Below are positions 15,637-57,251 of a stretch of DNA of 64,000 nt, in pieces. Within the stretch, counting starts at the first letter, position 1. Every line of letters begins with the position of its first letter. The stretch lies in the sequence record MZ574431.2; one strand, 5' to 3'. A model generated the notes under the pieces. The model saw nothing but the letters and a program-made list of their open reading frames with translations. It searched no databases and was not told the origin of the DNA. A program made the position numbers and the translations under genes.

Positions 15637-15637
15637 C

Positions 15638-16539: not shown

Positions 16540-16544
16540 ACGTT

Positions 16545-17045: not shown

Positions 17046-17065
17046 GTGTCTGGTTACCCTAGGCT

Positions 17066-17551: not shown

Positions 17552-17671
17552 CGGGAGTCTATCCTTAGGAAGGCCGGCCCAGCGCCGGCAAAGCTCCCTA
17601 CCCGATCTAGGAACACCGATCGACCCAAGATCGCAAACTATCCACAGCAACTTTTGCGACAGTCTAACGAC

Positions 17672-17700
17672 AAAAAGAAAGGCTCCCGAAGGAGCCTTCC
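17672..17700 (-). terminator. Intrinsic terminator (minus strand)
   Basis: AAGGCTCC-TTCG-GGAGCCTT-TCTTTTT on minus strand. Confidence 0.85.
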
Positions 17701-17703
17701 AAA

Positions 17704-18060: not shown

Positions 18061-18147
18061 GGGTGTCTCCTTTGTAGGCAAAGCCAAGGTGGGAGACAAG
18101 GACCGGGTTGTCCAGGCACTATAGTGCTGAAAAGAGGTCCAGACACG

Positions 18148-18173
18148 AAAAAGGGCTCCCGAAGGAGCCCCTT
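18148..18173 (-). terminator. Intrinsic terminator ending the large ncRNA
   Basis: GGGCTCC-TTCG-GGAGCCC-TTTTT on minus strand. Confidence 0.85.
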
Positions 18174-18174
18174 G

Positions 18175-19016: not shown

Positions 19017-19022
19017 GACTGG

Positions 19023-19051
19023 GTTGTAGACGGACGATTTCCGGCGGTCAA
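19023..19051 (-). promoter_or_regulatory. Promoter of the large ncRNA
   Basis: Minus strand TTGACC-N17-TACAAC. Confidence 0.75.
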
Positions 19052-19094
19052 CAGCCAAATCGCACTTTTTTCGAAAAAGTTTCGATCGGCGTCG

Positions 19095-19137
19095 CGATGA
19101 CGCGTTTCTTGACCCGCCCTTCGCGATCAGGCAGAAC
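19095..19137 (+). promoter_or_regulatory. Divergent promoter with phage motif
   Basis: GATGACGCGTTTC-TTGACC(19109-14)-N17-CAGAAC. Confidence 0.6.
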
Positions 19138-19139
19138 CA

Positions 19140-19473
19140 TCGGCGAGGGCGCCACGCGTAGTGGAAGAATCCGTGATCCCGCCCAAGGCGACGCCGCGTA
19201 TCGACCTACGGTCATGCGCAATAGGCCGACCCTAAGCCGCATCGCGTCGACTACCTGCATGCTCCAGGCACTGAGCAAATCCCGGTCCGGCGGACATCCC
19301 ACGAAGCTGGTGGAGATAACCGGAGGTTACCGTTCCTGTGGAGCGGATGGAAGGAAGGGTCTCAGTCGAGCCCTGGTAGGCCGTCCAGCCAGTAGCGCTG
19401 CTGTCTGGGTCCGGGACCGCCCAATCGACGACTCGCGAAAAGAGCCCGGCTGGTTTCGCGGCTGGCCGGGCTC
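19140..19473 (+). ncRNA. Candidate structured ncRNA divergent from the large ncRNA
   Basis: ~330 nt after a promoter; TCCCGG/CCGGGA and CGGAC/GTCTG long-range helices enclose several hairpins; terminal GAGCCCGGC/GCCGGGCTC stem. Confidence 0.5.
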
Positions 19474-19494
19474 ACTAACCGCTTGAGAACCCTC

Positions 19495-19818
19495 ATGATC
19501 GACAACACCTTCATCCAGGCCGACGGCCCGCTCTATCTGACGCTGGAAGCGGCCCTGGAGGCGCCCGGCGCGATCTACACCCACGTCAAGAAGGGCGGCA
19601 TCTATCGCCGTATGGGTGAGGCCAAGTACGCCGGCGACGCGGCGGCCCAGACGCTGGAAGGCGTGATGATGGCCGTCTATGAGCACCTCTACCCATACGC
19701 GCACTCCTTCTTTGTGCGTCCTCAAAGTGAGTTTGTCGAGGTCGTGCGGACCCAGCATGGCGAGCACCGCCGTTTCGTCTTTCACACCAATGAGATACTG
19801 ACCGTTCTCGACACTTGA
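19495..19818 (+). CDS. DUF1653-like small protein (107 aa)
   Basis: IYTHVKKGGIY...VYEHLY...FFVRPQSEF...RRF matches the YxHxKG..Y / VY..LY / xVRP..F / RF pattern of DUF1653. Confidence 0.65.
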   Translation: MIDNTFIQADGPLYLTLEAALEAPGAIYTHVKKGGIYRRMGEAKYAGDAAAQTLEGVMMAVYEHLYPYAHSFFVRPQSEFVEVVRTQHGEHRRFVFHTNEILTVLDT

Positions 19819-19920
19819 GGGTACGTGAGACCCCATACCGTGCCCTGCGGCATGGTGACGCAATCCTTGACTTGGCCTACGATCTAGGGTAGAGACGAGA
19901 CCCTCTCTCCCAAGGAAATC

Positions 19921-21645
19921 GTGATGCTCAAGCCGCAAGCCTCTTCGCGGCGCGCGCGCCTCGCGCCCGCGTCGATCCCCATCATTCCGGCTGACATCGC
20001 CCTGGTCGGCGCGGTCATCCCCGCCGGCAGTCCGGCCGGGACCCTGGTCGGCACGCTGAGCGCGCTACCGGCCGCCGGCGACTACGAGTTCACCCTACTC
20101 GACAGCGCGGGCGGGCGCTTTGCCATTCAGGGCTCGGCCCTGGTCGCGGGCGCCACGCCTTCGGCCGGTGGGGAGAACCCGACGATTACCGTGCGCACCA
20201 CGGCGGCGTTCTCGCGACTGACGTTCGACAAGACCTTCTCGATCGCTGTCCAGACCGTCGTCGCCCCGATCACGCTGTCGCCGACCAATCCGACCGTCGC
20301 CGAGAACACTGCTGCCGGCGTGACGGTCGCGTCGATTTCCTCGCCCGGCGCGACCTTGAGCCTGACCGACAATGCCGGCGGCCGGTTCGCCATCAGCGGG
20401 ACCAATCTGGTCACCGGCGCGACGGCGACCAACTATGAGGTGGCCACCAGCCACGATGTGACCATCCGCGCCGAGTATAACGGCGATGTGACGACCAAGA
20501 CCGTGACGGTCCAGGTCTCCAACGTCGTCGAGATCACCAATATCACCCTGGCCGCCAGCAGCATCCCCGAGAACTCGGCCGCCGGCGTGGTCGTCGGGCA
20601 ACTGGCCTCGGTCCCGCCCGGTGCGGCCCTGACCCTGACCGACAGCGCCGGCAGCCGCTTTGCCATCGACGGCAGCAACCGTCTCGTGGCTGGCTCGGTC
20701 GCCACGGACTACGAGACCAACACCACACACGACGTCTCCGTGCGCGCCACCCAAGGCCCCGACGTCTACAACAAGACCTTCACCATCAGCGTCACCAACG
20801 TCAATGAACTGACCGACATCACCCTGTCGGCCAATTCGATCGCCGAGAACTCGGCCGCTGGCGTCGTGGTCGGCAACCTCGCCAGCGTGATCCCCGGCGC
20901 CTCGTTCGCTGTGACCGGCCAGACGCCGTCAGGGACCTACTTCACCGTCAACGGCTCCAACCAGCTTGTGACTGGGGCGACGGCGACCAACTTCGAAGTC
21001 AATGCCAGCCACTCGGTCACCGTCACCGCGACCAAGGGCACCGACACCTTCCAAAAGACCTTCACGATCAACGTCAGCAACCAGACCGAGATCACCGACA
21101 TCAGCCTGAGCAACGCCAGTATCAACGAAGGTGTCGCCCAGGGCACCGCCGTCGGCACCCTGTCGTCGACCCCGACGGGCGCGACCTTCTCCTTGGCGCC
21201 AACCAACCCTGCGGGCACGCGCTTCCAGGTCTCGGGCACGACGCTGCAACAAGGCGCGACGCCGAACGATCGCGAAGCCACGCCGACCGTGACGGTGAAG
21301 ATTCGCGGCACGCGCCAGAGCGAAACCTTCGACAAGGATTTCGTCATCACCATCAACAACGTCGTCGAACTGACCGACTTCACGCTGTCGGGCCTGACGA
21401 TCGACGAGAACGCCGTCCAGGGCACTCCGGTGGGGACGCTGTCGTCGACCCCGACGGGCGCGACCTACACCCTGAACGACAATGCCGGCGGGCGCTTCCA
21501 GCTTGTCGCCGGCGCCATCCAGGCCGGCGCGGTGGCGACCGACTTCGATACCGCCACCAGCCACGACATCATCGTCACAGCCTCCCGAGGCGGCGAGACG
21601 ATGCAGAAGACCTTCACGATCACGGTCAACGACCTCGGCGACTAG
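19921..21645 (+). CDS. Cadherin-like repeat protein (574 aa), probable virion decoration/adhesin
   Basis: Five to six ~95-aa repeats: ITLS..SI.EN...G..VG.L....DNAGGRF......L......(N/D)(Y/F)E....HD(V/I)T.....FDKTFTI.V.NV; own promoter (TTGACT 19867) and terminator. Confidence 0.85.
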   Translation: MMLKPQASSRRARLAPASIPIIPADIALVGAVIPAGSPAGTLVGTLSALPAAGDYEFTLLDSAGGRFAIQGSALVAGATPSAGGENPTITVRTTAAFSRLTFDKTFSIAVQTVVAPITLSPTNPTVAENTAAGVTVASISSPGATLSLTDNAGGRFAISGTNLVTGATATNYEVATSHDVTIRAEYNGDVTTKTVTVQVSNVVEITNITLAASSIPENSAAGVVVGQLASVPPGAALTLTDSAGSRFAIDGSNRLVAGSVATDYETNTTHDVSVRATQGPDVYNKTFTISVTNVNELTDITLSANSIAENSAAGVVVGNLASVIPGASFAVTGQTPSGTYFTVNGSNQLVTGATATNFEVNASHSVTVTATKGTDTFQKTFTINVSNQTEITDISLSNASINEGVAQGTAVGTLSSTPTGATFSLAPTNPAGTRFQVSGTTLQQGATPNDREATPTVTVKIRGTRQSETFDKDFVITINNVVELTDFTLSGLTIDENAVQGTPVGTLSSTPTGATYTLNDNAGGRFQLVAGAIQAGAVATDFDTATSHDIIVTASRGGETMQKTFTITVNDLGD

Positions 21646-21648
21646 CAG

Positions 21649-21674
21649 AAAGCCCGGCTCCGGCCGGGCTTTTT
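21649..21674 (+). terminator. Intrinsic terminator
   Basis: AAAGCCCGGC-TCCG-GCCGGGCTTTTT. Confidence 0.85.
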
Positions 21675-21749
21675 CGTTGACGGCGTCATTGCGCCGCTTA
21701 TGGTGGCCTCACGGCGGAGAGATCGCGCCGTTCAGAAGGAGAAACCACC

Positions 21750-22283
21750 ATGACCATGATCGTCAAGATCATGACGGGCCATGACCTGCCCGACGATTCC
21801 CCCTACAAGACCTTCACCCTGGTGTCCGAAGTCAAGAGCGCGACATTCCACACCCAGGAAGACAGTGAGGGCCGGCGCCACTCCTACATGCGCGCCTACA
21901 TCGCTGATCCGGTCAAGACCGCCGAGGTCCCCGGTTTCAGCGAGCACGAAGTGGTCTATGACATCCCGCCCAACGTCAACGTCTACGTGATGAACGGCAA
22001 CGGCAAGACCATCTCGTCCTGGACCGCGCCGCCCGTGGCCGAGGGAAAGTTCACCTTTTCCGCTTCGGCGCCGATCAAATTTGTCGACGTCAGCCGTGAC
22101 ACCCTCTACGGGCGCATGGAAGCCTACTGCAAATATCGGGCAAATGGGTTCACCGCGATCAAGGCTGCCCTGGCCAGCGGCTTTCCTGATCCGACCAAGG
22201 TGATCGACGCGCTGGAAGCCGACCCACTCCTCATCTCCAGGATCGAGGAACTTTCGGCCCAGGCGTCCACCTCGACGACCTAG
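21750..22283 (+). CDS. Hypothetical protein (177 aa)
   Basis: AAGGAG RBS, typical codon bias. Confidence 0.75.
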   Translation: MTMIVKIMTGHDLPDDSPYKTFTLVSEVKSATFHTQEDSEGRRHSYMRAYIADPVKTAEVPGFSEHEVVYDIPPNVNVYVMNGNGKTISSWTAPPVAEGKFTFSASAPIKFVDVSRDTLYGRMEAYCKYRANGFTAIKAALASGFPDPTKVIDALEADPLLISRIEELSAQASTSTT

Positions 22284-22309
22284 GCCGGACGGGCCTGTCG
22301 AAAAACACG

Positions 22310-22357
22310 CGTCACGATGTCGTATTTCTTGACAGGCCCAAAAGCCTCCTGTATAAG
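22310..22357 (+). promoter_or_regulatory. Promoter of tRNA operon 3
   Basis: GATGTCGTATTTC-TTGACA-N17-TATAAG; predicted TSS at or next to leader ATG 22365 (leaderless). Confidence 0.8.
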
Positions 22358-22364
22358 CCCCGTT

Positions 22365-22463
22365 ATGAGCAAGTCGTATCGTCAATTTGTGCGCCAGATT
22401 CAGTTCGTCCGAGTTAATCGGGCGGGCCGTTCGCGCATGGATGATGGTGGGACCCGAGTGTAG
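22365..22463 (+). CDS. Leader peptide of tRNA operon 3 (MSKSYRQFVRQIQFVRVNRAGRSRMDDGGTRV)
   Basis: Codons 5-18 are all read by the eight downstream tRNAs; antiterminator segment begins immediately after. Confidence 0.75.
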   Translation: MSKSYRQFVRQIQFVRVNRAGRSRMDDGGTRV

Positions 22464-22535
22464 GGTCCAAAGACCTCTCAATCCATTTCTGCGAAGGCCC
22501 GCCCAGGTAACCCCTCGGCGGGCCTTCTGCGTTTT
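22420..22535 (+). promoter_or_regulatory. Attenuator: antiterminator/terminator of tRNA operon 3
   Basis: Terminator GAAGGCCCGCC(22493-503)/GGCGGGCCTTC(22517-27)+TGCGTTTT; competing helix GGGCGGGCC(22420-28)/GGCCCGCCC(22496-504), extended by ATGGAT/ATCCAT. Confidence 0.8.
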
Positions 22536-22591
22536 CACCCTTCGTTTTCATCCGGTAGCGAGCGAGATCATGACCGGAAACTAACCCCTTC

Positions 22592-22681
22592 GGGTCGGCA
22601 GGTGGGCACTGGCATGAGCCCAAGGGACTGTAACTCCCCCGTCGAAAGGCTGTGTAGGTTCGAGTCCTACCCGACCCACCA
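22592..22681 (+). tRNA. tRNA-Tyr(GTA), atypical acceptor/D-arm junction
   Basis: GGGTCGG/CCGACCC acceptor, GGGA-CTGTAAC-TCCC arm, V-arm, A73, CCA; 5-nt linker CAGGT before D-stem. Confidence 0.85.
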
Positions 22682-22714
22682 TTCTTCCGTGGAGCCCGAG
22701 TAAACGGCCTCTGC

Positions 22715-22786
22715 GCTTCAGTAGCTCAGTGGTAGAGCGCCGTCTTGACATGGCGGAGGTCGAAGGTTCGAACCCTTCCTGAAGCA
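22715..22786 (+). tRNA. tRNA-Val(GAC), no encoded CCA
   Basis: GCTTCAG/CTGAAGC acceptor, CCGTC-TTGACAT-GGCGG arm; abuts tRNA-Ile. Confidence 0.9.
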
Positions 22787-22787
22787 C

Positions 22788-22863
22788 GCTAGGTTAGCTC
22801 AGTTGGTAGAGCACCGGACCGATAATCCGGTTGTCACAGGTTCGAGCCCTGTACCTAGCACCA
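22788..22863 (+). tRNA. tRNA-Ile(GAT)
   Basis: GCTAGGT/ACCTAGC acceptor, CCGGA-CCGATAA-TCCGG arm (C33), CCA. Confidence 0.92.
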
Positions 22864-22978
22864 AACACTTATACGCTTTACCGTATAAAGTAAAAATATA
22901 CGATCTAGCGTATAAAATGACTTGAACTTACCGAATTCGGTAAATAAAAAGAGGTGAACAGAGGAAAGGACAAGTAAC

Positions 22979-23053
22979 GGGCCGGTAGCTCAGTGGTAGA
23001 GCGCTGCTGTCACATAGCAGATGTCGAGTGTTCGAGACACTCCCGGCCCACCA
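22979..23053 (+). tRNA. tRNA-Val(CAC)
   Basis: GGGCCGG/CCGGCCC acceptor, CTGCT-GTCACAT-AGCAG arm (G32), CCA. Confidence 0.92.
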
Positions 23054-23060
23054 GTTCAGT

Positions 23061-23134
23061 TGAAGCATGGTGTAATGGTAGCACATCAGAGTTTGGTTCT
23101 GGGAGTCTAGGTTCGAGTCCTAGTGCTTCAGCCA
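23061..23134 (+). tRNA. tRNA-Gln(TTG)
   Basis: TGAAGCA/TGCTTCA acceptor (U1:A72), TCAGA-GTTTGGT-TCTGG arm, G73, CCA. Confidence 0.92.
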
Positions 23135-23188
23135 ACTGAAAGAGTTTCAGGTCTCATGTGACGAGATCAGGAGAGAGAAGGCGAGTTT

Positions 23189-23263
23189 TTCCGAGTAGCT
23201 CAGCGGTAGAGCAGCGTGCTGTTAACACGACGGTCGGTGGTTCGATCCCACCCTCGGGAGCCA
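23189..23263 (+). tRNA. tRNA-Asn(GTT)
   Basis: TTCCGAG/CTCGGGA acceptor, CTGTTAA loop, G73, CCA. Confidence 0.93.
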
Positions 23264-23278
23264 TTACTTCTTCTCCAC

Positions 23279-23357
23279 GCCCGGTTAGCTCAGCGGAATT
23301 AAGAGCAGACGCCTACGAAGCGTAAGGTCGGGGGTTCGAATCCCTCACCGGGTGCCA
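23279..23357 (+). tRNA. tRNA-Arg(ACG)
   Basis: GCCCGGT/ACCGGGT acceptor, CTACGAA loop, CCA. Confidence 0.93.
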
Positions 23358-23386
23358 TTTTCACGTATGCAGTGCTTCGGCCCTGC

Positions 23387-23461
23387 GGGGATGTAGCTCA
23401 GTGGTAGAGCGGGAGACTGAAAATCTCCGCGTCGGTGGTTCGACCCCACCCTTCCCCACCA
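23387..23461 (+). tRNA. tRNA-Phe(GAA)
   Basis: GGGGATG/CTTCCCC acceptor, GGAGA-CTGAAAA-TCTCC arm, CCA. Confidence 0.93.
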
Positions 23462-47762: not shown

Positions 47763-50700
47763 ATGACCGACTACACGCCCATGCTCCACCTGCCCCTGGT
47801 TGCCCCCAACCAGGACCAGAAGGAAGCCACGATCAACACCGCCCTCGCCATCCTTGAGGCGGCGAACAACGACACGCTCCAGGTGTCGCTGTCTGCGGGC
47901 GACGTGACGCTGAACACCGATCAGTTCACCAAGTATTTCCACCACCAGTTCTACGGCCACACCACGGCGCGCAGCGTCACCCTGCCCGACACCAATCGCT
48001 GGTTCGCGGTGGAAAACCAGGGCACGGCCACCATCACCTTCGTGATCAGCGGGTCCTCGGGCCTCTCGGCGGAGCTTGCCTCGGGCAAGATCGGTCTGGT
48101 CGTGTCCGACGGCACGGACCTGCGTTTTGTCGTCCCCGATCCGACCAGCGGGCTTGGCCTGCTGTCTGACCTCTCCGATGTCGACGGCGGCCAGACCGAC
48201 GGCCAGCTTCTGCGCTGGTCCAATGCCGAGAGCGCCTGGAAGCCGTGGACGCTCGACTTCTCGTTCCTGAACCTCAACGACACGCCCACCACCTACGTGT
48301 CCAACATCGGCAAGCTGGTGGCGGTCAAGTCCGACGGCACCGGCCTGGAGTTCGTCTCCTCGGCCGCCAACGTCAATTCGTTCGTCGACCTGGACGACAC
48401 GCCCGACGGCTATGCGGGCTATGCCAACCGCACCGTCAAGGTCAACGGCGCCGCCAATAGCCTGATCTTCGATTGGCCTAAGCTGACGGAAGCCTCCGAC
48501 TTCCCGTCGTCCTACGCCGGCGCGGCCAACAAGTTCCTGCGCGTCAACGCCGGTACGAACGCCGTGGAATTCCATGCGCCGGTCGTGGCCGACCTTTCCG
48601 ACGGGCCGGGCGCGCCCACGGGCAACGCCCTGAAGTACCTGCGCGTCAAGGCTGACGGGACCGGCGTCGAATACGCCACGGGCACCGGCGGCCCGGACGA
48701 CTTCCTCGAATTGCTCGACACCCCCGACAGCTACGCGGGCAAGGGTCTCTACTTCGTGCGGGTCAAGTCCGACCTCTCGGGCCTGGACTTCCTGCGCGCC
48801 AGCTTCACCGACCTGATCGACGTGCCCAGCACCTATTCGGGGCAGGGCGGCAAGTACGTCAAGGTCAATGGTGGCGGGACGGGCTTGACCTTTTCGGCGC
48901 CGACAGTGCAGGAACTGTCCAACGGGCCGGGCAATCCGGCAGGTCAGGCCAACAAGGTTGTGCGCGTCAAGTCCGACGGCACCGCCCTTGAGTACGCGAC
49001 CTTGCCGATCACCACGCTCTCGGGCTTCCCGTCGAGCTTCGCGGGCCAGGGCGGCAAGTACCTCCAGGTCAAGGGCGACGAGACTGGCGTCCAGTTCGTC
49101 ACCTCCTCCTATACGACCAACTTCCTGGCCCTGACCGACACGCCGAGCAGCTACGTCGGGCAAGCTAACAAGCTGATCGCCGTCGACCCGACGGGCACGG
49201 GCCTGATCTTCGTCTCGCCGTCCAGCGGCGGGGCGACGAAGCTCGATGATCTCAACGACGTGGAGTTCCCGACCGGCACGCCGGCCGATGGCATGGTGCT
49301 GACCTTCCGGGGCGGTATGTGGTCGCCGGAGGTCTCCGCTGGAGGTTCCGATGGAACCCTGGCCGGCTTGACCGACGTGGCCCTGACCACGCCTGAGGAG
49401 GGTCAGGCGCTCGTCTATCGAAGCGGCGCCTGGACCAACGAGGACCAAAGCTCCACCGCGATCGGCGTGCCCTCGTACGGCGCGCATGCTTATTGGCGCC
49501 TGCTGCTGCACACGACGGATGGATCGACCATCCAGTACGGCATCCAGGAAATCCAGTTCAAGGCGACGCGCGACGGCCCTGATCTGGCCAACGGCGGCAC
49601 CGCCTCGGCCAGCACCGACGAATTCGGCACCGTCACGGGCGCGTTCGACAACATCATCAGTGGCGCATGGTTCTCGACCACCGCCGCCGATGGTGAGTGG
49701 ATCAAGTACCATTTCACCGCGCCGGCCGGCGTGCGCTATGTCACGATCCAAGGCTCGCAGTCCCAGCCGTCGACGTCGCCGGCCTCGTTCTCGGTTCAGT
49801 ACAGCGACGACGACGCCGAATGGACCACGGCCTGGGAAGTCATCGGTCAGACCGGCTGGGCGCCGGGCCAGACGCGCATGTTCCATGGTCCGATGGACCT
49901 CTTCTTCACCGATCTGGCCGACGCGCCCCAGTCCTATGTCGGGCAAGCGGGCAAGTCGCTGCGGGTCAACACCGGCGGCACCGCCCTGGAGTTCTTCACC
50001 CTGCCCTTCGTGCCGGTGTCGATCGGCGATCTGGCTGACGTGGAGATGGGCACGGGCACGCCGGCCAACGGCTCGGTCCTGACCTGGAAGGACGGCGTCT
50101 GGCAGGCGGAGCCAAACACCGGTGGTGGAGGCGGCGGCGGCGCGAGTTCCTTCCTGGGCCTCAACGACACACCCGACAGCTACGTCGGCGAGGGTGGTAA
50201 TGCCATCCGTGTCAAGATGACCGAAGATGGTTTGGAATTCTACACCGCCGGGACCGGAGGGGGTGGAGGCGGTAGCTGGCGCGGCGGCTGGGCGGCGGGC
50301 GCCGAGCAGGTCTTCATCGATTTCGAATCGGGTAGCCTCAATCCGGCGTTCACCTACGATGCGTCGGGCTTTGCCGTCGTTGTCCAGCCCGATACCTTGG
50401 CGGGCACGACCAATGCACTGAAGTTCCGTCCGATTGGCAATGGCGCGACCTGCTACTGCGAACTGCCGATCACGGACGTTCTCAGCGTCTCAAGCCTGAA
50501 GGTGCGCTACAAGGTCTCTTCCGAAGGCCCAGACTTTTTCCGCGTCTTGCAGGACGGGTCGCAGGTTCACCAGGACAGCGGCAACACCGGTCTTTACGAA
50601 GAATTCTCGCTGGCCACGACGGGTGACCACACCCTGCGATTCTCCTATACCAAGGACGGATCGCTCGCGGTTGGCGACGACACCGTCTATATCTCGCAGA

Positions 50701-52613
50701 TCACCTACTACAAGACCCTGGATAATCCGTACGTCTATGGCGATACGGTCACCTACCAGGGCGCCTATTGGCTGTGCCGCCAAGCAGGTACGTCCGAAGC
50801 CCCCGGCGCTGGCGATGACTGGATCAAGCTGCCCGAGACCTTGGCGTTGCTCAAGGACATCGACTTTTCGACTCCTCCGTCGGACGGTCAGGCGCTCGTC
50901 TATGATGGCGCCTCCAACAAGTTCAAGGCCGCAGACGTCGCGGGTGGCACAAGCGGCGGCAACAGATACAACATCGGCGTGACCCCGCGCACGCGCCTGC
51001 ACCGCGCCGCTGTTCAGTCGATCCCGACCTCGACCTGGACGGCCGTCCAATGGGATACCGAAACCGAGGACGCGGTCAACGCTTTCGTCTCCGGCGCCAA
51101 CACCCGCGTCACCATCCCCGTGGGTGTAAAGGCCGCCCGCGTGACGGCCTACGCCAACTGGGTCACCTCGGTTGATGCTGCGAACGTCGGTATGGCCCTT
51201 CGCCGCAACGGCGTTGAGATCGGCTCGACTGGCGGTTCGCCGATCGCGGCCTCGCGCCCAGGTCAGTACCAGTCTCATCTGAACTTCACCTCGGAGTGGT
51301 TCACGGTCACCGCCGGTGACTACTACGAGATGTTCGTCTTCCAAAATTCCGGCTCAAGCCAGGACCTGAACGGTCCGGTCACCAACTTTGGCGAGAACAC
51401 CTATCTCCAGTTCGAATGGGACGAAGGGGTGCCGGTCTCGTCGATCGAAGCTGGCGACTTCCACGCCCCGCACCAGGGCTGGAGAATGTTGGTTCTGGAC
51501 AGCCAGACGGGCACCTACGCCACGATCACGGAGTTGAAGTTCTACGACCGCAGTGGCGTGCAGATCGCCACGACGGGTGGCAAGCTGTTCGACACCAATT
51601 CCCACCCCAGCTACCCGGTGCAGCAAGCGTTCGATGGCTCGACCACCTACTGGTCGTCGTCCCAGACGACCTCGACCGGTCAACTTGCCGGCCCTGGCTA
51701 CATCTTCGCCGCGCCTGTCGATGTCGGTTCGGTCAAGGTCACCTCGCCCAGCACCGACTTCAACGCCACCAACTCGCCCAAGAACTTCGTCATCCAGTAC
51801 AGCGACGACGCCGGCGCCACGTGGCTGACCTTCGCCATGTTCACCAACCAGACCGCCTGGGGTGATCGCGAAGAACGCACCTTTGTCCTGCCGACGAGTG
51901 GTGTCGCCCGCGTCGGGGGCGCCCGTACACTCGACGAACTCAACGACGTCGCGATCGGCGTGCCCAAGCATGGGGACCTGCTGACCTACGATGGCGCGAC
52001 CTCGACCTGGAAGCAGAAGACCCGCTGGGGCTATGCTCCGCCTAAGGCGGCAGACTTCCCGACGGCCGTGGGCGCGGTCGCCCTGACCCTGTCGGATGAC
52101 GATGAAGCTGGGTTGATGATCGACTGCGGCGCCAGCGCCACCTCGGACATTCAGCGCGGCGTTTTCAAAAGCCTGCCGACGGGTGACTGGTCCGTTACGG
52201 CCAAGATCATCGATCATCTGGCGCCGGTCTACTATAACGCCGTCGGGATCATGCTGCGCGAGTCGGCCACCGGCAAGCTCGTACTGCTGGGCTGCGAGGT
52301 CGCCGGATCGAGCTTCACAGTTCCGATGCGCCAAGTGCGTTACTCGCGACTGCCGGGCCTGTCCGGCTTCACGGCCAATGACTATGGCCGTCCCTCCCCG
52401 TCGATCCCGCAATGGTATCGGATTTCCTTGACGGGCAGCACCCTGAAGGCAGAAGTCTCGGCCGACGGGAAGTTCTGGCGCACCATCGTCACGCAGGCTG
52501 TGACGACCGGGTTCACGACCAAGCCTGACCAGATCGGTCTGGGCTGTTCGCTGAACTATACCGATACCCAGAGCGCCATGCTCTCGGTTCCCTACTGGAA
52601 CCAGTCCTTCTAA
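47763..52613 (+). CDS. Tail fibre / receptor-binding protein (1616 aa)
   Basis: DUF2793-like N-terminus; ~10 DxPxSYxGxxxKxxxVxxxGTGLEF repeats; LxDLxDV motifs; two galactose-binding/discoidin-like modules; C-terminal lectin-like domain. Confidence 0.85.
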   Translation: MTDYTPMLHLPLVAPNQDQKEATINTALAILEAANNDTLQVSLSAGDVTLNTDQFTKYFHHQFYGHTTARSVTLPDTNRWFAVENQGTATITFVISGSSGLSAELASGKIGLVVSDGTDLRFVVPDPTSGLGLLSDLSDVDGGQTDGQLLRWSNAESAWKPWTLDFSFLNLNDTPTTYVSNIGKLVAVKSDGTGLEFVSSAANVNSFVDLDDTPDGYAGYANRTVKVNGAANSLIFDWPKLTEASDFPSSYAGAANKFLRVNAGTNAVEFHAPVVADLSDGPGAPTGNALKYLRVKADGTGVEYATGTGGPDDFLELLDTPDSYAGKGLYFVRVKSDLSGLDFLRASFTDLIDVPSTYSGQGGKYVKVNGGGTGLTFSAPTVQELSNGPGNPAGQANKVVRVKSDGTALEYATLPITTLSGFPSSFAGQGGKYLQVKGDETGVQFVTSSYTTNFLALTDTPSSYVGQANKLIAVDPTGTGLIFVSPSSGGATKLDDLNDVEFPTGTPADGMVLTFRGGMWSPEVSAGGSDGTLAGLTDVALTTPEEGQALVYRSGAWTNEDQSSTAIGVPSYGAHAYWRLLLHTTDGSTIQYGIQEIQFKATRDGPDLANGGTASASTDEFGTVTGAFDNIISGAWFSTTAADGEWIKYHFTAPAGVRYVTIQGSQSQPSTSPASFSVQYSDDDAEWTTAWEVIGQTGWAPGQTRMFHGPMDLFFTDLADAPQSYVGQAGKSLRVNTGGTALEFFTLPFVPVSIGDLADVEMGTGTPANGSVLTWKDGVWQAEPNTGGGGGGGASSFLGLNDTPDSYVGEGGNAIRVKMTEDGLEFYTAGTGGGGGGSWRGGWAAGAEQVFIDFESGSLNPAFTYDASGFAVVVQPDTLAGTTNALKFRPIGNGATCYCELPITDVLSVSSLKVRYKVSSEGPDFFRVLQDGSQVHQDSGNTGLYEEFSLATTGDHTLRFSYTKDGSLAVGDDTVYISQITYYKTLDNPYVYGDTVTYQGAYWLCRQAGTSEAPGAGDDWIKLPETLALLKDIDFSTPPSDGQALVYDGASNKFKAADVAGGTSGGNRYNIGVTPRTRLHRAAVQSIPTSTWTAVQWDTETEDAVNAFVSGANTRVTIPVGVKAARVTAYANWVTSVDAANVGMALRRNGVEIGSTGGSPIAASRPGQYQSHLNFTSEWFTVTAGDYYEMFVFQNSGSSQDLNGPVTNFGENTYLQFEWDEGVPVSSIEAGDFHAPHQGWRMLVLDSQTGTYATITELKFYDRSGVQIATTGGKLFDTNSHPSYPVQQAFDGSTTYWSSSQTTSTGQLAGPGYIFAAPVDVGSVKVTSPSTDFNATNSPKNFVIQYSDDAGATWLTFAMFTNQTAWGDREERTFVLPTSGVARVGGARTLDELNDVAIGVPKHGDLLTYDGATSTWKQKTRWGYAPPKAADFPTAVGAVALTLSDDDEAGLMIDCGASATSDIQRGVFKSLPTGDWSVTAKIIDHLAPVYYNAVGIMLRESATGKLVLLGCEVAGSSFTVPMRQVRYSRLPGLSGFTANDYGRPSPSIPQWYRISLTGSTLKAEVSADGKFWRTIVTQAVTTGFTTKPDQIGLGCSLNYTDTQSAMLSVPYWNQSF

Positions 52614-52628
52614 AACCCCGAGTAGCTT

Positions 52629-53273
52629 ATGCGTCATTACTGGAAGGTCCCCCGGCTTTGGGCCGGGGAGACCTGCGTCATCATTGGCGGCGGCCCCAGC
52701 GTCGCCGATGTCGATCTCTCCCAGATCAAGGGCCGCGCCCGTGTGATCACCCTCAACAACGCTTGGGAACTGGTCCCTTTCAACGACATCCAGTTCTTCG
52801 CCGACACCCGCTGGTGGCGCTGGCATGGCGACAAATTCCCGGCTGATTATCCGGCTCGGATCGTCACGGTCTCCAAGGGCGACTTGCCCAACGGCGAGCG
52901 GGTCTTCCGGCTGCGCAAGGAGCATGAGGGCGGCATCTGCACCGATCCGCAGGCTGTGTTCGGCCGCGACAGCGGGCTGATGGCGATGAACCTTGCCTTC
53001 AATCTCGGGGTGGGGCGCATCGTCCTGATCGGCTATGACATGCGCTTCACGGGCGGCCAAGGGCACTGGCACGAGGATCACCCGATCCCCGGCAAGGAAA
53101 GCTACTATACCGACGACTTCGCGCCGCTCTATCCGCCGGCGGTCGCCAAGATGCAGCAAGTGGGCGTCGAGGTGCTGCGCGTGACGCCCTCGGCCCTTGA
53201 CTTCATCCCCCAGGTCACGCTCGAAGACGCACTCTCGCGCCCACCGCGCCACCGAAGCGATCTCTATGCCTAG
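52629..53273 (+). CDS. DUF115/sialyltransferase-like glycosyltransferase
   Basis: CVIIGGGPS...VITLNN...FFAD...IVLIGYDM..GHWH pattern. Confidence 0.6.
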   Translation: MRHYWKVPRLWAGETCVIIGGGPSVADVDLSQIKGRARVITLNNAWELVPFNDIQFFADTRWWRWHGDKFPADYPARIVTVSKGDLPNGERVFRLRKEHEGGICTDPQAVFGRDSGLMAMNLAFNLGVGRIVLIGYDMRFTGGQGHWHEDHPIPGKESYYTDDFAPLYPPAVAKMQQVGVEVLRVTPSALDFIPQVTLEDALSRPPRHRSDLYA

Positions 53274-54090
53274 AGCCTATGTCGATCTCAAGGACACGCC
53301 CCACTATCGGCTGACGAGTTTCATCAACGGCTTTGCGCGCCTGGGCTTCTTGGTGCGACGCGGAGCGCCCGACCAGCCGCTGGGTCCCGACGACGCGGTC
53401 GTGGTCTGGAACCGGATGGGGCGCTCGCTGAAGGCCGAAACCATGGCCAGGGAAGGTGGAGCGGCGCTGATCGTCGCCGAGAACGGCTACCATGGCAAGG
53501 ACGCCGACGGCATCCAAAGCTATGCCCTGGCGCTGGATGGCCACAATGGCTCGGGCCGTTGGTTCGTCGGCGACGACGAGCGCCTGAAGGCCTTGCGCAT
53601 CGATTTCAAGCCCTGGCGCGTGCAGCAGACCGGCAAGTTCCTGATCGCCGCCCAGCGCGGGATTGGCTCACCCTTGATGCGTTCTCCGCCGCACTTCGCC
53701 GAACGGCTGGTCGAGCGGGTGGAAGCCCAGGGCATGCGCGCCTATATCCGCCCCCATCCAGGTCAGCACACGCCGCCAACGACCCTGCTCCAGGACCTGG
53801 AGGACAAAGAGGGCCTGCTGGTCTGGTCCTCGAACGCGGCGACCCAGGCATTGATCCACGGTGTGCCTGTTCATTACATGGCGCCGTCGATCGTGACGCG
53901 AGGCGCGGCCAAGCGCTTGACAACTCCTTTCTTGTGGAATAGCTCTGCGGATGCTCGCCCGGAGGCTTTCCAGCGGATGGCGTGGGCGCAGTGGTTCTTG
54001 AGCGAGATCGCTTCTGGCGAAGCGCTCAGAACCTTACTCGACGTCCACCAGGGCAAGCTGCCCTCCGTCCAAGAAGGATTTGGTATTTGA
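53266..54090 (+). CDS. Capsule-synthesis-like GT-B glycosyltransferase 1 (274 aa)
   Basis: YIRPHP...LLVWSSNAATQALIHGVPV C-terminal motif. Confidence 0.65.
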   Translation: MPRAYVDLKDTPHYRLTSFINGFARLGFLVRRGAPDQPLGPDDAVVVWNRMGRSLKAETMAREGGAALIVAENGYHGKDADGIQSYALALDGHNGSGRWFVGDDERLKALRIDFKPWRVQQTGKFLIAAQRGIGSPLMRSPPHFAERLVERVEAQGMRAYIRPHPGQHTPPTTLLQDLEDKEGLLVWSSNAATQALIHGVPVHYMAPSIVTRGAAKRLTTPFLWNSSADARPEAFQRMAWAQWFLSEIASGEALRTLLDVHQGKLPSVQEGFGI

Positions 54091-54947
54091 GCGATTTTGG
54101 GGTCTTCAAGCCTCCCTTCGTCGTGATCCAGCGCGGCAAGGAAAAGTCCGAGATGCTGGCCTCGGCCGTCGTCAAGGGCTATGGCATGGGCGTGGGCCAG
54201 ATCGGCTACGGCACGCCCCTGGCGGACATCCCCGAGACGTTCATGCCGGTCTACGTCGGGGTCCACCCCCAGACGATCCAGTCGCTCCGCGACTGCCACG
54301 CCGCCCAGCGCCCCTTCGTCACGGTCGATAACGGCTATTTCAAGGGCTACAAGCGCGGCGGCTATTTCCGCCTGACGACCAACGCCATGCAGTGGGCGCA
54401 CCGCCGCCATGGGGCCAACGCCCAGGACATGGCTCGCTTCAAGGCCCTGGACATGCCGGTCCAACCTCTGCGTCTGGGCCAGGGCGAACATATCCTGATC
54501 GCCTGCCAGTCGCCGACTTGGTATCAGATGATGGGCCTCGAAAGCGTCGAGGCCTGGGTCAATCCGCTGATTGATCGCCTGCGGCTGGTCACCGACCGAC
54601 CGATCCGCGTGCGCCAAAAACCCCTCAAGGGCGTCAAAGAGCCGCCGATCGAGGAAGACCTGGAAAAATCCTGGGCCGTGGTGGCCTATTCGTCCAACAC
54701 CTTGATCGAGGCGGCCCTAATGGGCATCCCGATCTTCCCTATGGCGTTCAGCGCTGCAACGCCTCTGGGCTCGACCGACCTCTCCACCATCGAGAGCGCG
54801 CCTTTCCGAAATCAGCGCACCATCAACCGTCCCGAGGTCTTTGCCCAATTGGCAGGCGCCCAATGGACGATCCCCGAAATCGAGTCGGGCAAGGCGTGGC
54901 TGGACCTAAGCCAGCGCTACGATCCCGACTTCAAGCCGCTGGCCTAA
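54087..54947 (+). CDS. Capsule-synthesis-like GT-B glycosyltransferase 2 (286 aa, TTG start)
   Basis: IRVRQKP...VVAYSSNTLIEAALMGIPI; paralogous to previous gene; AAGGA RBS, TTGA overlap. Confidence 0.65.
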   Translation: MSDFGVFKPPFVVIQRGKEKSEMLASAVVKGYGMGVGQIGYGTPLADIPETFMPVYVGVHPQTIQSLRDCHAAQRPFVTVDNGYFKGYKRGGYFRLTTNAMQWAHRRHGANAQDMARFKALDMPVQPLRLGQGEHILIACQSPTWYQMMGLESVEAWVNPLIDRLRLVTDRPIRVRQKPLKGVKEPPIEEDLEKSWAVVAYSSNTLIEAALMGIPIFPMAFSAATPLGSTDLSTIESAPFRNQRTINRPEVFAQLAGAQWTIPEIESGKAWLDLSQRYDPDFKPLA

Positions 54948-54956
54948 GGACCCACC

Positions 54957-55763
54957 ATGCCCCATCACGTCTTCGTCGGCTATGACAGCCGCGAGCAGGC
55001 CGCCTACGACGTCTGTGTCGACAGCCTCGTCGAGCATAACAAAGGTGACGACAACGACATCGTCGTCCACAAGCTGGAGCACCGCGACCTGCGGCGGCGT
55101 GGCCTCTTCACCCGGCCCTGGCGGATCGACGAGACGGGTCAGTTCTGGGACGAGCGCGACGGACGACCGTTCTCGACCGAGTTCAGCCACAGTCGCTTCC
55201 TGGTGCCGACCCTGGCCTCGCAGATGGGCATCGTCTCGCCGGTCATGTTCGTCGACTGCGACTTTCTGTTCGTCGAGCCGGTGCAGAACCTCTTCCACGA
55301 GGTCCTGGCGACCAAGCCCTTCGAGGACGGCAGCAATCCGCTCTGGGTGGTCAAGCACGAATTCAGCAAGGCCGAGGAAGGCGTCAAGATGGACGGCATG
55401 GTCCAGCAGGCCTACTTCCGCAAGCTGTGGTCGAGCCTGATGATCTACGACCTGCGCTTCCCGCTGCGATGGTTCCCGACCGCCGGCGAGGCCAACCACC
55501 ATTCCGGCTCGCATCTGCACGGCTTCTACATCGCCCCCAACCTGCCGATGGAGGATGATGTCATCGGAGCCCTTGATCCGGCCTGGAACTGGATTCCGGG
55601 CCATTCCTCGGACGACATCAAGCCCAAGGCCGTCCACTGGTCCCTAGGCGGGCCGTGGATGGACGGCTATGAAGACACCCCCTACGCCGTGACGTGGCGG
55701 CAGTACCGCAAGGCCACCCTGCTGGAGCAGGCTGGCATCCTCAAGAAGACCAAGGCAGCCTGA
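54957..55763 (+). CDS. GT-A fold glycosyltransferase (GT8-like)
   Basis: VFVGYDSRE...STEFSHSRFLVP...FVDCDFLF (DxD)...RKLWSSLM...WNW...HWSLGGPW. Confidence 0.8.
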   Translation: MPHHVFVGYDSREQAAYDVCVDSLVEHNKGDDNDIVVHKLEHRDLRRRGLFTRPWRIDETGQFWDERDGRPFSTEFSHSRFLVPTLASQMGIVSPVMFVDCDFLFVEPVQNLFHEVLATKPFEDGSNPLWVVKHEFSKAEEGVKMDGMVQQAYFRKLWSSLMIYDLRFPLRWFPTAGEANHHSGSHLHGFYIAPNLPMEDDVIGALDPAWNWIPGHSSDDIKPKAVHWSLGGPWMDGYEDTPYAVTWRQYRKATLLEQAGILKKTKAA

Positions 55764-56290
55764 TGTCGTCGACCATCTCCGAAGCCTACCGCCGGCTGAA
55801 CGCCCAGCTACACGCCGAAAACGACAGCTACGGCGTCCATGGCTGGATGTGGCTGGGACCGGTGCTTCACTTCGCCCAGGCCGCTGGCGCCCGCTCCCTC
55901 CTCGACTATGGCTGCGGCAAGGACACCCTGGCGCGCTGGATGCCCGTGACCGCGCCGGCCATCCGCGTCGAAAGCTACGACCCGGCCATCCCCGAGCATG
56001 CGGCCGATCCGCCGCCTTGCGACTTCGTCGCCTGCCTGGACGTGATGGAGCACATCGAGCCTGACCATCTCGATGCGGTGCTGGCCCATATCCGCACCAA
56101 GATGCGCAAGGGCGGCTTCATGGTCATCTGCCTGCGCGAGGCCAAGAAGGCGCTTCCCGACGGGCGTAACGCGCACCTGATCGTGGAGTCCTCGGACTGG
56201 TGGCTGGACAAGCTCCGCACGGTCTTCAGCCGCGTCGACAAGCTCAAGGGCCTGTCGAAGGATTCGCTGGTCGTGGTGGTGACCCCCTAA
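55763..56290 (+). CDS. Class I SAM-dependent methyltransferase (175 aa)
   Basis: LLDYGCGK motif I; DFVACLDVMEHI; DGRNAHLI. Confidence 0.85.
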   Translation: MSSTISEAYRRLNAQLHAENDSYGVHGWMWLGPVLHFAQAAGARSLLDYGCGKDTLARWMPVTAPAIRVESYDPAIPEHAADPPPCDFVACLDVMEHIEPDHLDAVLAHIRTKMRKGGFMVICLREAKKALPDGRNAHLIVESSDWWLDKLRTVFSRVDKLKGLSKDSLVVVVTP

Positions 56291-57159
56291 TGGGTATTGG
56301 CGACAAGATGATGGCGATCGGTGATGCCTGGAGGCTGCACCGAAACGATCCGTTCAACCGGCGCGTGGCGATCGGCGATGGCCGGATCATCGACCAGACC
56401 GACAACGACCTGCTCTTTGGCCTCAACTTCATCGCCCGCGCTGGCCACATGGTCGAGCGCGAAGAGGTCCAGTGGGTGATCAGCTACCCCGGAAATCGCC
56501 CGTACATCGACTATCAGGCGATGCGCCGCGCTCTGGTCGCCCAGGGCCAGCGGGTCTTCAAGCAGAAGAAGCTGGCCTCGACGTTGGGCCGGTACATCTG
56601 GAAGATGGACTATCGTCCAACGCCGGCGCCGATCAAGCAGACGGCCGAGGAGGAGATGATCACCGCCCGCTGGGCCAAGACCCCCTTCGTGGCGATCGAG
56701 CCCTATATCAAGGACGCAGCGCCCCGCGCCAAGCAGTGGCCCGTCGAGTACATGGCCGAGACGGTGCGGCGCCTCCGCGATCAGGGCGTCAAGGTCGTGC
56801 AGATCAGCGCCGGCGGCCAGGACATCATGCCCGGTGCCACCATGGCGGCCACGCGATCCTATCGAGAGGCCCTGGCGGTCCTGAAGGCTGCCTCGCTCTA
56901 CATCGGCCCCGAGGGCGGGCTGCACCATGGCGCGGCTGCCATGGGCACCAAGGCCGTGGTCATGTTCGGCGGCTACATCGATCCGCTGGTCACCGGCTAC
57001 GACATGCACGTCAACCTCACGGGCGGGGTCGAGCAGTCCTGCGGCGTCCGCGAGGGCCACTGCCCGCACTGCAAGGAGGCGATGGCGAAGATCACGCCCG
57101 ATCTGGTCATGGATCACGCCGTCCGGTTGCTGCGAGAGACCGTCACGAAAGTGCCTTGA
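56290..57159 (+). CDS. GT9/heptosyltransferase-like glycosyltransferase (289 aa)
   Basis: MGIGD N-terminus; LYIGPEGGLHHGAAAMGTKAVVMFG. Confidence 0.78.
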   Translation: MGIGDKMMAIGDAWRLHRNDPFNRRVAIGDGRIIDQTDNDLLFGLNFIARAGHMVEREEVQWVISYPGNRPYIDYQAMRRALVAQGQRVFKQKKLASTLGRYIWKMDYRPTPAPIKQTAEEEMITARWAKTPFVAIEPYIKDAAPRAKQWPVEYMAETVRRLRDQGVKVVQISAGGQDIMPGATMAATRSYREALAVLKAASLYIGPEGGLHHGAAAMGTKAVVMFGGYIDPLVTGYDMHVNLTGGVEQSCGVREGHCPHCKEAMAKITPDLVMDHAVRLLRETVTKVP

Positions 57160-57251
57160 CGCGTTCAGAAACCTCTGCTACGTGTCGTGATTCTTGACTT
57201 GAGACGTTAACCGTGACACGAAAGGGGCCTCTCCCCTTTCGTGAGCACCCT

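Follow-up and report, generated by a model that had tools for sequence, protein, structure and literature searches.

A predicted six-gene glycan-assembly cassette in Caulobacter phage RB23 and its relatives in uncultured phages

The cassette and its flanking genes

Within the window, the 64,000-nt stretch of DNA that was analysed as a whole, positions 52629-57159 are occupied by six co-oriented, overlapping genes that lie between the gene for a 1616-aa fibre-like tail protein and an endolysin gene. This DNA is 100% identical over 4531 nt to that of RB23, a Caulobacter phage (Bertelyvirus), and the six open reading frames located here by a preliminary description agree with the GenBank calls gp162-gp167 of that phage. 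All are read from the plus strand. The first, g1 (52629..53273; 214 aa), encodes a distant DUF115/MptE-like (Maf-type) protein and is followed by the gene for a KpsC-fold, glycosyltransferase-like protein (g2 or K1; 53266..54090; 274 aa) and that for its divergent paralog, which has a TTG start (g3 or K2; 54087..54947; 286 aa). The remaining three are predicted to encode a GT8/GT24-like glycosyltransferase of GT-A fold with a DxD motif (g4; 54957..55763; 268 aa), a class I SAM-dependent methyltransferase (g5; 55763..56290; 175 aa), and a GT9-family glycosyltransferase (g6; 56290..57159; 289 aa). The run is as tightly coupled as had been described, with overlaps of 8 nt (g1/g2), 4 nt (g2/g3), 1 nt (g4/g5), and 1 nt (g5/g6) and a single gap of 9 nt (g3/g4).

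The upstream gene (47763..52613, plus strand; RB23 gp161) ends 15 nt before the start of g1, also as first reported, and a scan of the intervening sequence found neither a promoter-like nor a terminator-like site. Its product is labelled 'putative tail protein' in GenBank, belongs to PHROG 11660, and contains two F5/8 type C domains and a CBM5/12-like motif. The fibres had been called Ser/Thr-rich, which is true to a modest degree: serine and threonine together make up 19% of gp161 and 24% of gp160, against 7-10% of the six cassette enzymes. This upstream neighbour of g1 might be a glycan acceptor. On the other side of the cassette, an 11-bp stem-loop (57217..57243, plus strand) separates g6 from the endolysin gene, which starts at 57252; the folded region has a predicted energy of -38 kcal/mol (z = -3.95), and none of 200 shuffled sequences was equally stable. 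The stem-loop has no U tract and was not called by the terminator scan; it may mark a transcript 3' end or a processing site.

The cassette genes are real; they are also found in CcrSC, CcrBL9, CcrColossus, and CcrPW, where they keep the same order at 50-83% amino-acid identity. In the Caulobacter phages that carry it, it adjoins the lysis genes; phiCbK-type relatives lack it. The six proteins are predicted to be soluble, as none has a long hydrophobic segment (the highest 19-residue hydropathy average among them is 1.66), and a profile search of the cassette revealed no gene for a lipid carrier, flippase, or ligase.

Predicted activities of the six proteins

The g1 product belongs to PHROG 4603 (E = 1.3e-38; residues 19-204 align with positions 1-175 of the 178 in the profile), a family that includes P1 PmgO and D3 orf7 and whose name, 'alpha-2,3-sialyltransferase', is an annotation rather than a function shown by test; a functional test of a phage member was not found in the literature. 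The DUF115/sialyltransferase-like label originally given to g1 is upheld by this membership and by 23 of 24 g1 homologs that match the Maf-type family PF01973 (best E 6e-10). It is weakened by g1 itself, whose match to PF01973 covers profile positions 139-170 only and scores 23.9 bits (E = 4e-5) against a gathering score of 34.6, and the g1 family profile found no match in the PDB by sequence. Bacterial DUF115 proteins are flagellin glycosyltransferases. Nearly all g1 homologs thus resemble the Maf enzymes in sequence, whereas g1 differs from them in its single domain of about 210 aa and its score below the Pfam threshold.

The bacterial role of DUF115 raises the alternative of a target protein outside the virion, such as host flagellin or pilin, to which phiCbK-like phages adsorb, or of an oligosaccharide that is left free or is secreted. 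Because PF01973 also includes a pterin kinase, g1 may not be a glycosyltransferase. Its subthreshold score and the family name MptE-like favour this alternative, as do the Brevundimonas, Pseudomonas, and P1-type phages that have a g1 homolog but lack the KpsC-like genes. The alternative is nonetheless improbable, since the module is common to many phages of probably diverse hosts and is conserved in the company of virion genes rather than of features particular to a host.

In BLASTP the products of g2 and g3 align as paralogs, with 33% identity across 160 aa (E = 1e-16), and they fall into no Pfam family; no window protein matched Capsule_synth (PF05159) at E <= 1. Among 45 members of their KpsC-like family, which comprises 4024 representative clusters in metagenome-rich data, three matched Capsule_synth weakly (best E 0.084) and seven matched DUF6716 (best E 0.0015), and the family profile found no match in the PDB by sequence. 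In a Foldseek search with the g2 model (pLDDT 93), however, the nine top matches were KpsC and KrkA, followed by WbbB (probability 1.0; E 4e-8 to 1e-5; TM 0.34-0.56). By these best matches the g2 model has a modified GT-B fold, nearest to the KpsC/WbbB/KrkA Kdo transferases, and g3 probably shares it through paralogy. The 'capsule polysaccharide biosynthesis' (Capsule_synth-like) proteins of Tetraselmis virus 1 were also among the fold matches of g2 (TM 0.69).

The enzymes that share this modified GT-B fold, KpsC/KpsS (GT107), WbbB (GT99), KrkA (GT140), and KpsS1 (GT118), are retaining beta-Kdo or pseudaminic-acid transferases. Retaining beta-Kdo transferases bind CMP through a (K/R)XHP motif (PMC12887879) and carry an aspartate nucleophile in a QXXXD motif (PMC10148158, PMC12887879). 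The g2 protein shares with them the former motif, an acidic residue that is conserved in its N-terminal domain, and a similar order and spacing of motifs: across 71 sequences of its family the RxHP motif is maintained (R162 94%, H164 and P165 100%), E72 is invariant, and G134 is conserved at 98%. It departs from them at the position corresponding to QXXXD, as mapped by motif order and spacing rather than superposition, which reads Q130-x-x-x-G134 (glycine in 98%); no aspartate is 100% conserved in the family, the highest being D43 at 90%. In g3 the same site, mapped likewise, reads Q141-S-x-x-(F/W) with no aspartate, D81 is invariant among orthologs, and the HP-motif histidine, essential in KrkA, is missing, being K or W in each of the 67 orthologs that align there. 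Further differences from the KpsC-type enzymes are TM-scores for g2 of only about 0.5 and a Capsule_synth match that is not significant. The pair had been described as paralogous, capsule-synthesis-like GT-B proteins; the paralogy and the KpsC-type fold of the g2 model bear this out, but the label needs a qualifier because the defining catalytic aspartate is absent. A KpsC fold with RxHP and no aspartate nucleophile therefore suggests a different chemistry, and makes the family of enzymological interest.

The g4 model (pLDDT 90) matched WbbM, LARGE1, UGGT, XXYLT1, LgtC, GlyE, and glycogenin with a Foldseek probability of 1.0, and PBCV-1 A64R was also among its matches; the structure searches that had been suggested as a check on glycosyltransferase folds were thus run on two models, and returned GT-B for g2 and GT-A for g4. 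By sequence g4 belongs to PHROG 28018 and has no match to Pfam GT8; one homolog carries the JGI name 'lipopolysaccharide biosynthesis glycosyltransferase'. Its DxD aspartates, D100 and D102, are invariant in 54 family members and H227 is conserved at 96%, so that the model and these residues mark g4 as a predicted retaining GT-A enzyme of the GT8/GT24 clan with DxD and a downstream histidine, in keeping with its first description as GT-A (DxD). The assignment of g5 as a SAM methyltransferase likewise stands: it matches Methyltransf_23 (42.1 bits against a threshold of 27, E = 9.4e-11) and PHROG 24759, and its SAM motif D48-x-G50-x-G52 is 100% conserved. The label 'FkbM family', given to g5 in some GenBank records, is unsupported, as FkbM-type (Methyltransf_21) genes are separate genes of other modules.

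That g6 is GT9-like is confirmed by its match to Glyco_transf_9 (PF01075; 32.3 bits against a gathering score of 22). With the family profile, the PDB yielded WaaF (1PSW, 7.5e-8) and WaaC (6.5e-5) and no match to the TibC or Aah structures at E <= 1, which places g6 closer by sequence to WaaF/WaaC than to the protein heptosyltransferases. It scores far below the NCBIfam equivalog cut-offs for LPS heptosyltransferases I, II, and III and for Aah/TibC (14-22 bits against 134.6-467). The C-terminal nucleotide-sugar domain aligns with those of the LPS-core enzymes WaaC and WaaF, whereas the N-terminal acceptor domain is short and unmatched, and g6 has a C-terminal three-cysteine cluster (C251, C258, C261; 97-100% conserved). 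In the same way g4 shares the GT8 fold and DxD of the LgtC/RfaJ-type enzymes of the LPS core, yet both g4 and g6 lie far below all equivalog cut-offs, and their context is a phage virion operon.

The window contains no nucleotide-sugar synthesis genes of the families tested, in line with the initial observation. Host pools are a plausible source of donors, the check having covered a further 95 kb or so of the genome besides the window.

Gene neighbourhoods of the module in other phages

A scan of IMG/VR with three peptide patterns gave 245 matches, 205 of which encode a relative, and a collinear module occurs in at least 205 viral contigs of that database. In its layout the DUF115 gene comes first, followed by two KpsC-like genes, by optional methyltransferases and GT9, and last by the GT8-like gene. 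When the first KpsC-like protein was clustered at no more than 70% identity, 61 groups were obtained, in which the genes lie on one strand in constant order; g1 is present in 56 groups, both KpsC-like genes in 56, g4 in 46, g6 in 38, and g5 in 25. We found no paper describing the module.

Recognised virion genes adjoin the module in 35 of the 61 groups. Upstream stand terminase, portal, major capsid, or collagen/CBM5-12 fibre genes, with a fibre gene directly before g1 in 13 groups and a capsid gene in four; downstream stand head-tail adaptor Ad1, head closure Hc1, and Neck1. The usual site is between capsid and connector genes, in phages of 30-60 kb. No recognised structural neighbour was seen in the other 26 groups, partly because of short flanks and a limited profile set. 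The collagen-like fibres beside the module have G-X-Y repeats that are not Thr-rich. Among cultured phages, the Pseudomonas D3-like ones have a homolog of g1 that sits after the major head protein gene and before Ad1, or the reverse, and a g5-like methyltransferase among the connector genes. Modules of other phages additionally contain genes for NDP-sugar tailoring (C-methyltransferase, DegT aminotransferase, 4,6-dehydratase, TPP enzyme, and heptose-pathway-like genes), which fits a variable, exposed glycan.

In six of the 61 groups the module instead follows DNA polymerase and SNF2 helicase genes, and RB23 has a thymidylate-synthase-like gene and a dNMP kinase about 15 kb downstream. Hypermodification of DNA with diverse glycans by phage glycosyltransferases is known (work cited in PMC12619734; a paper on YerA41), and the module might similarly build a multi-sugar hypermodification on a hydroxymethylated base of phage DNA and so evade host nucleases. 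The customary position between capsid and connector genes speaks against this, as does the thymidylate-synthase-like gene that phiCbK-type relatives also carry without the module. We know, moreover, of no DNA-acting members of the DUF115, KpsC-like, or GT9 families, and DNA as the acceptor is very improbable.

Among 185,579 species genomes, scanned with one peptide pattern, the module was confirmed in two MAG contigs, and it appears to be phage-specific and close to absent from bacterial genomes. This scarcity, together with the hydropathy maximum of 1.66, sets the module apart from serotype conversion of the Gtr type, in which membrane-embedded transferases or a flippase are borne on prophages. 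The same distribution bears on the broader alternative that the module remodels an envelope glycoconjugate of the host during infection, such as the LPS core or a different glycan that is lipid-linked or lies at the surface. It might thereby keep progeny or competing phages from adsorbing to infected cells and debris, or change the envelope before lysis. Such a role would suit the LPS-core-like enzyme set, in which g6 resembles WaaF/WaaC, g4 LgtC/WbbM, and g2 the Kdo transferases, and the place of the cassette beside lysis genes in Caulobacter phages and beside an endolysin in one subgroup of the wider collection. It is nevertheless unlikely, given that the module is, in that scan, nearly missing from bacterial genomes and prophages, the usual home of surface-converting genes, that strongly hydrophobic segments are absent from the cassette proteins, that most sites lie inside head-gene blocks from capsid to connector, and that late co-transcription would leave little time for envelope turnover.

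A proposed glycan on the virus particle

The best reading, held with moderate confidence, is that virion proteins are glycosylated in the cytoplasm and that the nucleotide sugars come from the host. Hundreds of uncultured phages share the module, which in most of them stands among head genes, and a glycan on the virus particles is therefore probable. The acceptor we infer by comparison of gene neighbourhoods, with reserve, because the enzyme set is also LPS-core-like and a minority of modules stand beside replication genes. Further points against the proposal are the 26 groups in which no structural neighbour was recognised, the collagen-like repeats that are not Thr-rich, the subthreshold score of g1, and the histidine lost from g3. 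Of the earlier preference for virion proteins or the host receptor, the virion part has gained comparative support (head and virion blocks of many unrelated uncultured phages, rarity in bacteria, solubility), and the notion of a cassette building a multi-sugar, methylated glycan is supported by profile, structure, and motif evidence.

Under this proposal the six genes would form a cytoplasmic glycan-assembly module, co-transcribed with tail genes, and would most likely assemble an acidic glycan, short and methylated in part, straight on structural proteins of the virion. The likeliest acceptors here are the fibre-like protein encoded next to g1 or further tail or head proteins that are rich in Ser/Thr. 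Assembly would begin at a side chain of the protein, through the Maf-like g1 or another member. From a CMP-activated donor, g2 would transfer a ulosonic or nonulosonic acid of the Kdo or pseudaminic-acid type, by a mechanism that could not employ the KpsC aspartate nucleophile and for which the invariant E72 is a candidate base; g3 would either act beside it with another donor or have no catalytic role. With an ADP-heptose-like donor, g6 would add a heptose-type sugar, g4 would add a hexose from a UDP-sugar, g5 would methylate the glycan, and the donors would be drawn from host pools.

Glycans on the capsid and tail tube of mycobacteriophages are known (Freeman et al. 2023, as cited in PMC12619734). 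In that system phage glycosyltransferases were shown to decorate capsid and tail proteins in the cytoplasm, which is proposed here, and in both cases the genes travel with structural genes. The present module differs in its enzyme families (DUF115, KpsC-fold, GT9, and GT8-like), in its Gram-negative hosts, and in having methyltransferases and sugar-tailoring genes as integral parts. Cytoplasmic machinery for particle glycans, on capsid and fibrils, is also encoded by giant viruses of algae and amoebae (PBCV-1 A64R, Tetraselmis virus 1); those viruses and their hosts are unrelated, and the module architecture is not shared.

To our knowledge, glycosylated phage particles have so far been demonstrated for mycobacteriophages only, and the paper that described them reportedly saw little sign of the trait in other phages. 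It is possible, if rather doubtful, that the particles of many tailed phages of Gram-negative bacteria are coated by a variable, acidic, phage-made glycan from a dedicated phage-specific module, the core of which is a Maf-like enzyme and a previously unrecognised glycosyltransferase family (KpsC fold, RxHP, no aspartate nucleophile). Were this so, Kdo-, heptose-, and hexose-type enzymes would give the particle an LPS-core-like surface, a form of host mimicry or shielding. Particle glycosylation would then be a general trait, since the module has thousands of distinct relatives and is placed among head genes of uncultured phages and in cultured Caulobacter and Pseudomonas phages; this would matter for adsorption, for the stability of particles, for how defences and grazers recognise them, and for phage therapy. 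The Caulobacter phages offer a natural contrast, with phiCbK lacking the cassette and Bertelyvirus and Colossusvirus carrying it, that makes the question directly testable.

Position and conservation of the cassette

The six genes at 52629-57159 (g1 to g6) are best regarded as a phage glycosylation system, the core of which is probably a new family of glycosyltransferases. This region is 100% identical to its counterpart in Caulobacter phage RB23 (MZ574433, 114904-119434) and in five other Bertelyvirus isolates, and 99.9% identical in a sixth, BL47; the isolates are siphophages of ~312 kb belonging to the phiCbK group of the subfamily Dolichocephalovirinae. Upstream lie genes for a tape measure protein, GTA-like tail proteins, and a 1616-aa fibre-like tail protein, and downstream the endolysin and other lysis genes followed by DNA-metabolism genes. 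G+C content is ~64% throughout, and composition is unbroken at the cassette. The gene bounds drawn here coincide with the GenBank calls gp162-gp167, and the 15 nt that the preliminary description placed between the tail-protein stop and the start of g1 were measured again. The gene run is likewise as tight as had been described, with overlaps of 8 nt (g1/g2), 4 nt (g2/g3), 1 nt (g4/g5), and 1 nt (g5/g6), and a 9-nt gap between g3 and g4. Scanning the stretch from the tail gene to g1 for promoter-like and terminator-like sites found none of either kind; a hairpin with an 11-bp stem, without a U tract, lies 3' of g6. Because of the 15-nt spacing, the overlaps, and the lack of such a site before g1, the cassette can be read as the putative tail end of the virion operon. 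Long antisense ORFs over the cassette (51354-53252, 53874-54617, and 56287-57117, all on the minus strand) are missing from the GenBank calls and were dismissed as high-GC artefacts.

Several features of the surrounding window may be recorded here. The fibre-like protein (47763-52613) carries two F5/8 type C (discoidin) domains, a CBM5/12-like motif, many short 'DTP-x-SY-x-G'-type repeats, and two poly-Gly linkers. Two dense tRNA blocks occur amid structural genes at 12521-23458 (26 tRNA genes according to the RB23 annotation), and a 2757-aa ORF annotated just as 'tail protein' (1339-9612) is located well upstream of the genes for the tail tube and the tape measure protein.

All six genes are retained, with order and junction unchanged, in the cultured phages CcrSC and CcrBL9 (75-84% amino-acid identity) and CcrColossus and CcrPW (48-57%), and the cassette is also present in Colossus-like metagenomic contigs. 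At the same tail/lysis junction, phiCbK-type phages carry two genes unrelated to the cassette, and Brevundimonas jumbo phages carry g1 with two further genes, for which no family was found. Since relatives hold other genes at this junction, the cassette is an accessory island there. Relatives of g1 extend to Pseudomonas D3-like phages, P1 (PmgO), and Xanthomonas jumbo phages. In Pseudomonas phage PMG1 (locus L096), a g1 relative (4450-5046) lies between the major head protein and adaptor Ad1 genes, and a g5-like methyltransferase gene (7212-7829) sits among connector genes, between Hc1 and a gp10-like gene; the arrangement in these D3-like temperate phages resembles a module that has been cut down and split. 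In Colossus-type phages, a gene annotated as 'histidyl tRNA synthetase' is found between cassette and endolysin (L003, 13088-13942; L094, 17753-18837; L095, 17091-18500) and a Ro60/TROVE-like gene just beyond the lysis genes, and phiCbK (L092) has an intein annotated in its ribonucleotide reductase large subunit (14589-17396).

Predicted enzymes

The genes g2 and g3, previously described as two capsule-synthesis-like GT-B paralogs, are indeed paralogs, and a structural model of g2 built on 45 homologs (pLDDT 93) has a KpsC-type fold. Its best PDB matches by Foldseek are KpsC, KrkA, and WbbB, all retaining Kdo transferases, and among viral proteins the best matches take in the CcrColossus paralog as well as Tetraselmis virus 1 proteins annotated 'capsule polysaccharide biosynthesis'; comparisons with PDB chains by g2 sequence and by g2-family profile gave nothing meaningful. 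Three features define retaining Kdo transferases (PMC10148158; PMC12887879): an aspartate nucleophile within QXXXD, CMP binding through (K/R)XHP, and a glutamate acting as base. When these motifs were mapped by order and spacing, not by superposition, 71 distinct g2-type proteins were found to retain R-x-H-P (R in 94%, H and P in 100%) and an invariant E72; the KpsC-defining aspartate, however, has no counterpart, as no aspartate is invariant and glycine stands four positions past the conserved Gln/Asn in 98%. Given the retained RxHP and the missing nucleophile, g2 probably binds a CMP-type donor, with the KpsC double-displacement route probably closed to it. Among 67 g3-type proteins, all those aligned at the column of the HP histidine have Lys or Trp instead, and the position equivalent to E72 holds an invariant aspartate; because the histidine is replaced, g3 would either use a different donor or be non-catalytic. 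By these motifs, the KpsC-like pair is judged not to be a canonical Kdo transferase. In PMC10148158 itself, 'His94' is named as the general acid of KpsC-N, though the HP motif would be expected C-terminal to Asp160, and the numbering looks inconsistent.

The DUF115/sialyltransferase-like character proposed for g1 is backed by an end-to-end match to PHROG 4603 (1e-38) and by matches to PF01973 in 23 of 24 homologs, although the score of g1 itself against PF01973 (23.9 bits) falls under the gathering score. These profile matches identify it as a predicted distant DUF115/MptE-like protein. A g1-family profile recovered no solved relative from the PDB, and the T-cell-receptor chains returned by a g1 sequence search were noise. 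For g4, a sequence search of PDB chains gave nothing meaningful, and its model (pLDDT 90) is a GT-A fold of the GT8/GT24 type with an invariant DxD and one conserved histidine, which agrees with the earlier assignment; modelling and Foldseek, the latter named among the checks recommended previously, placed both g2 and g4 in glycosyltransferase folds. The remaining assignments also held: g5 is a class I SAM methyltransferase (Pfam and a conserved motif), and g6 is a GT9 protein by Pfam, with a C-terminal domain that aligns with WaaF and WaaC in a family-profile search, three conserved cysteines, and a wide distance from every named equivalog in NCBIfam. No family was found in Pfam or NCBIfam for g2, g3, or g4, and a long hydrophobic segment is absent from all six proteins.

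A related module in uncultured phages

Close relatives are numerous for both g2 (391) and g4 (416), with a Pfam family in none and many on shared contigs. Searched by profile against 1.84 billion representatives, the g2 family takes in 4024 clusters, and at least 205 viral contigs of IMG/VR encode a g2 relative by peptide-pattern scan. Genes of 80 fetched loci and the cultured phages were labelled with profiles built for this analysis, and loci were binned into 61 groups whose first KpsC-like proteins are at most 70% identical between groups. The shared architecture is collinear and on one strand, comprising g1, two KpsC-like genes, optional methyltransferases with g5, an optional g6, and then g4; g1 and the two KpsC-like genes each occur in 56 of 61 groups, g4 in 46, g6 in 38, and g5 in 25. 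Variable inserts encode an NDP-sugar C-methyltransferase, a DegT aminotransferase, a 4,6-dehydratase/epimerase, and a TPP enzyme, and heptose-pathway-like genes lie beside the module in one contig. A capsid-adjacent module in locus L007 (5965-6993 and 10194-11144) carries a Methyltransf_24 gene and two radical-SAM genes, one of which encodes a SPASM domain, a sign that its sugar or peptide chemistry may be unusual.

The likeliest reading is that the module glycosylates particle proteins in the cytoplasm, which fits enzymes that are soluble, lie with virion genes and appear to share their transcript, are nearly confined to phages, and vary in sugar-tailoring content. The main rival is remodelling of a host lipid-linked glycan, since the same enzyme set assembles LPS core. 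Against this, the module is nearly absent from bacterial genomes: a scan of 185,579 species (one genome each; one peptide pattern, compared with three for the viral scan) confirmed two MAG contigs of 27.9 kb and 3.2 kb. Its head-gene context also argues against host-glycan remodelling. Flanking ORFs were clustered and representatives annotated, with neighbour profiles representing families in this data set alone and many loci being short. Upstream neighbours include large terminase, portal, major capsid, and a collagen-like protein with a CBM5/12-like motif, and downstream neighbours include Ad1, Hc1, and Neck1. In 13 groups the gene directly before g1 encodes a fibre (the Caulobacter fibre, with the CBM5/12-like motif as its only shared feature, is included), and in four it is a capsid gene. 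In six of 61 groups the module instead follows DNA polymerase and SNF2 helicase genes and faces an endolysin; glycosylation of DNA would fit these replication-adjacent groups but is at odds with the capsid-connector position. Less probably, the target may be a host protein, or g1 may have a role other than that of a transferase.

Candidate donors and acceptors

Judged by the enzyme families, the putative donors are a CMP-ulosonic or nonulosonic acid, an ADP-heptose-like sugar, and a UDP-hexose. Caulobacter makes all three donor types. As had been stated, no nucleotide-sugar genes are visible in the window, where 14 phage-encoded sugar-nucleotide enzymes used as queries found no relative; nor did these queries, which did not include CMP-sugar synthetases, in RB23 1-50 kb and 94.9-139.4 kb (~95 kb). 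Literature searches found no paper describing the cassette or module, and the cassette genes go unmentioned in the phiCbK genome paper. Virion glycosylation in mycobacteriophages, as cited in PMC12619734, offers a parallel to the proposed mechanism.

The fibre (19% Ser+Thr) and its Ser/Thr-rich neighbour (24%) are candidate acceptors. The earlier suggestion that virion proteins are modified gains from the virion genes adjacent to the module in 35 of 61 groups; the acceptor itself is what we infer. Known O-glycosylated collagen-like proteins have Thr-rich G-X-Y repeats; such repeats were ruled out in the module-adjacent collagen-like fibres, where Asp, Pro, and Lys dominate. A collagen-like fibre with the CBM5/12-like motif lies directly between the portal gene and the module at L014 (3237-4607), L063 (6392-8947), L087 (8507-9394), and 14 further loci of uncultured phages, and PHROG 2271 hints at the existence of fusions between portal and fibre.
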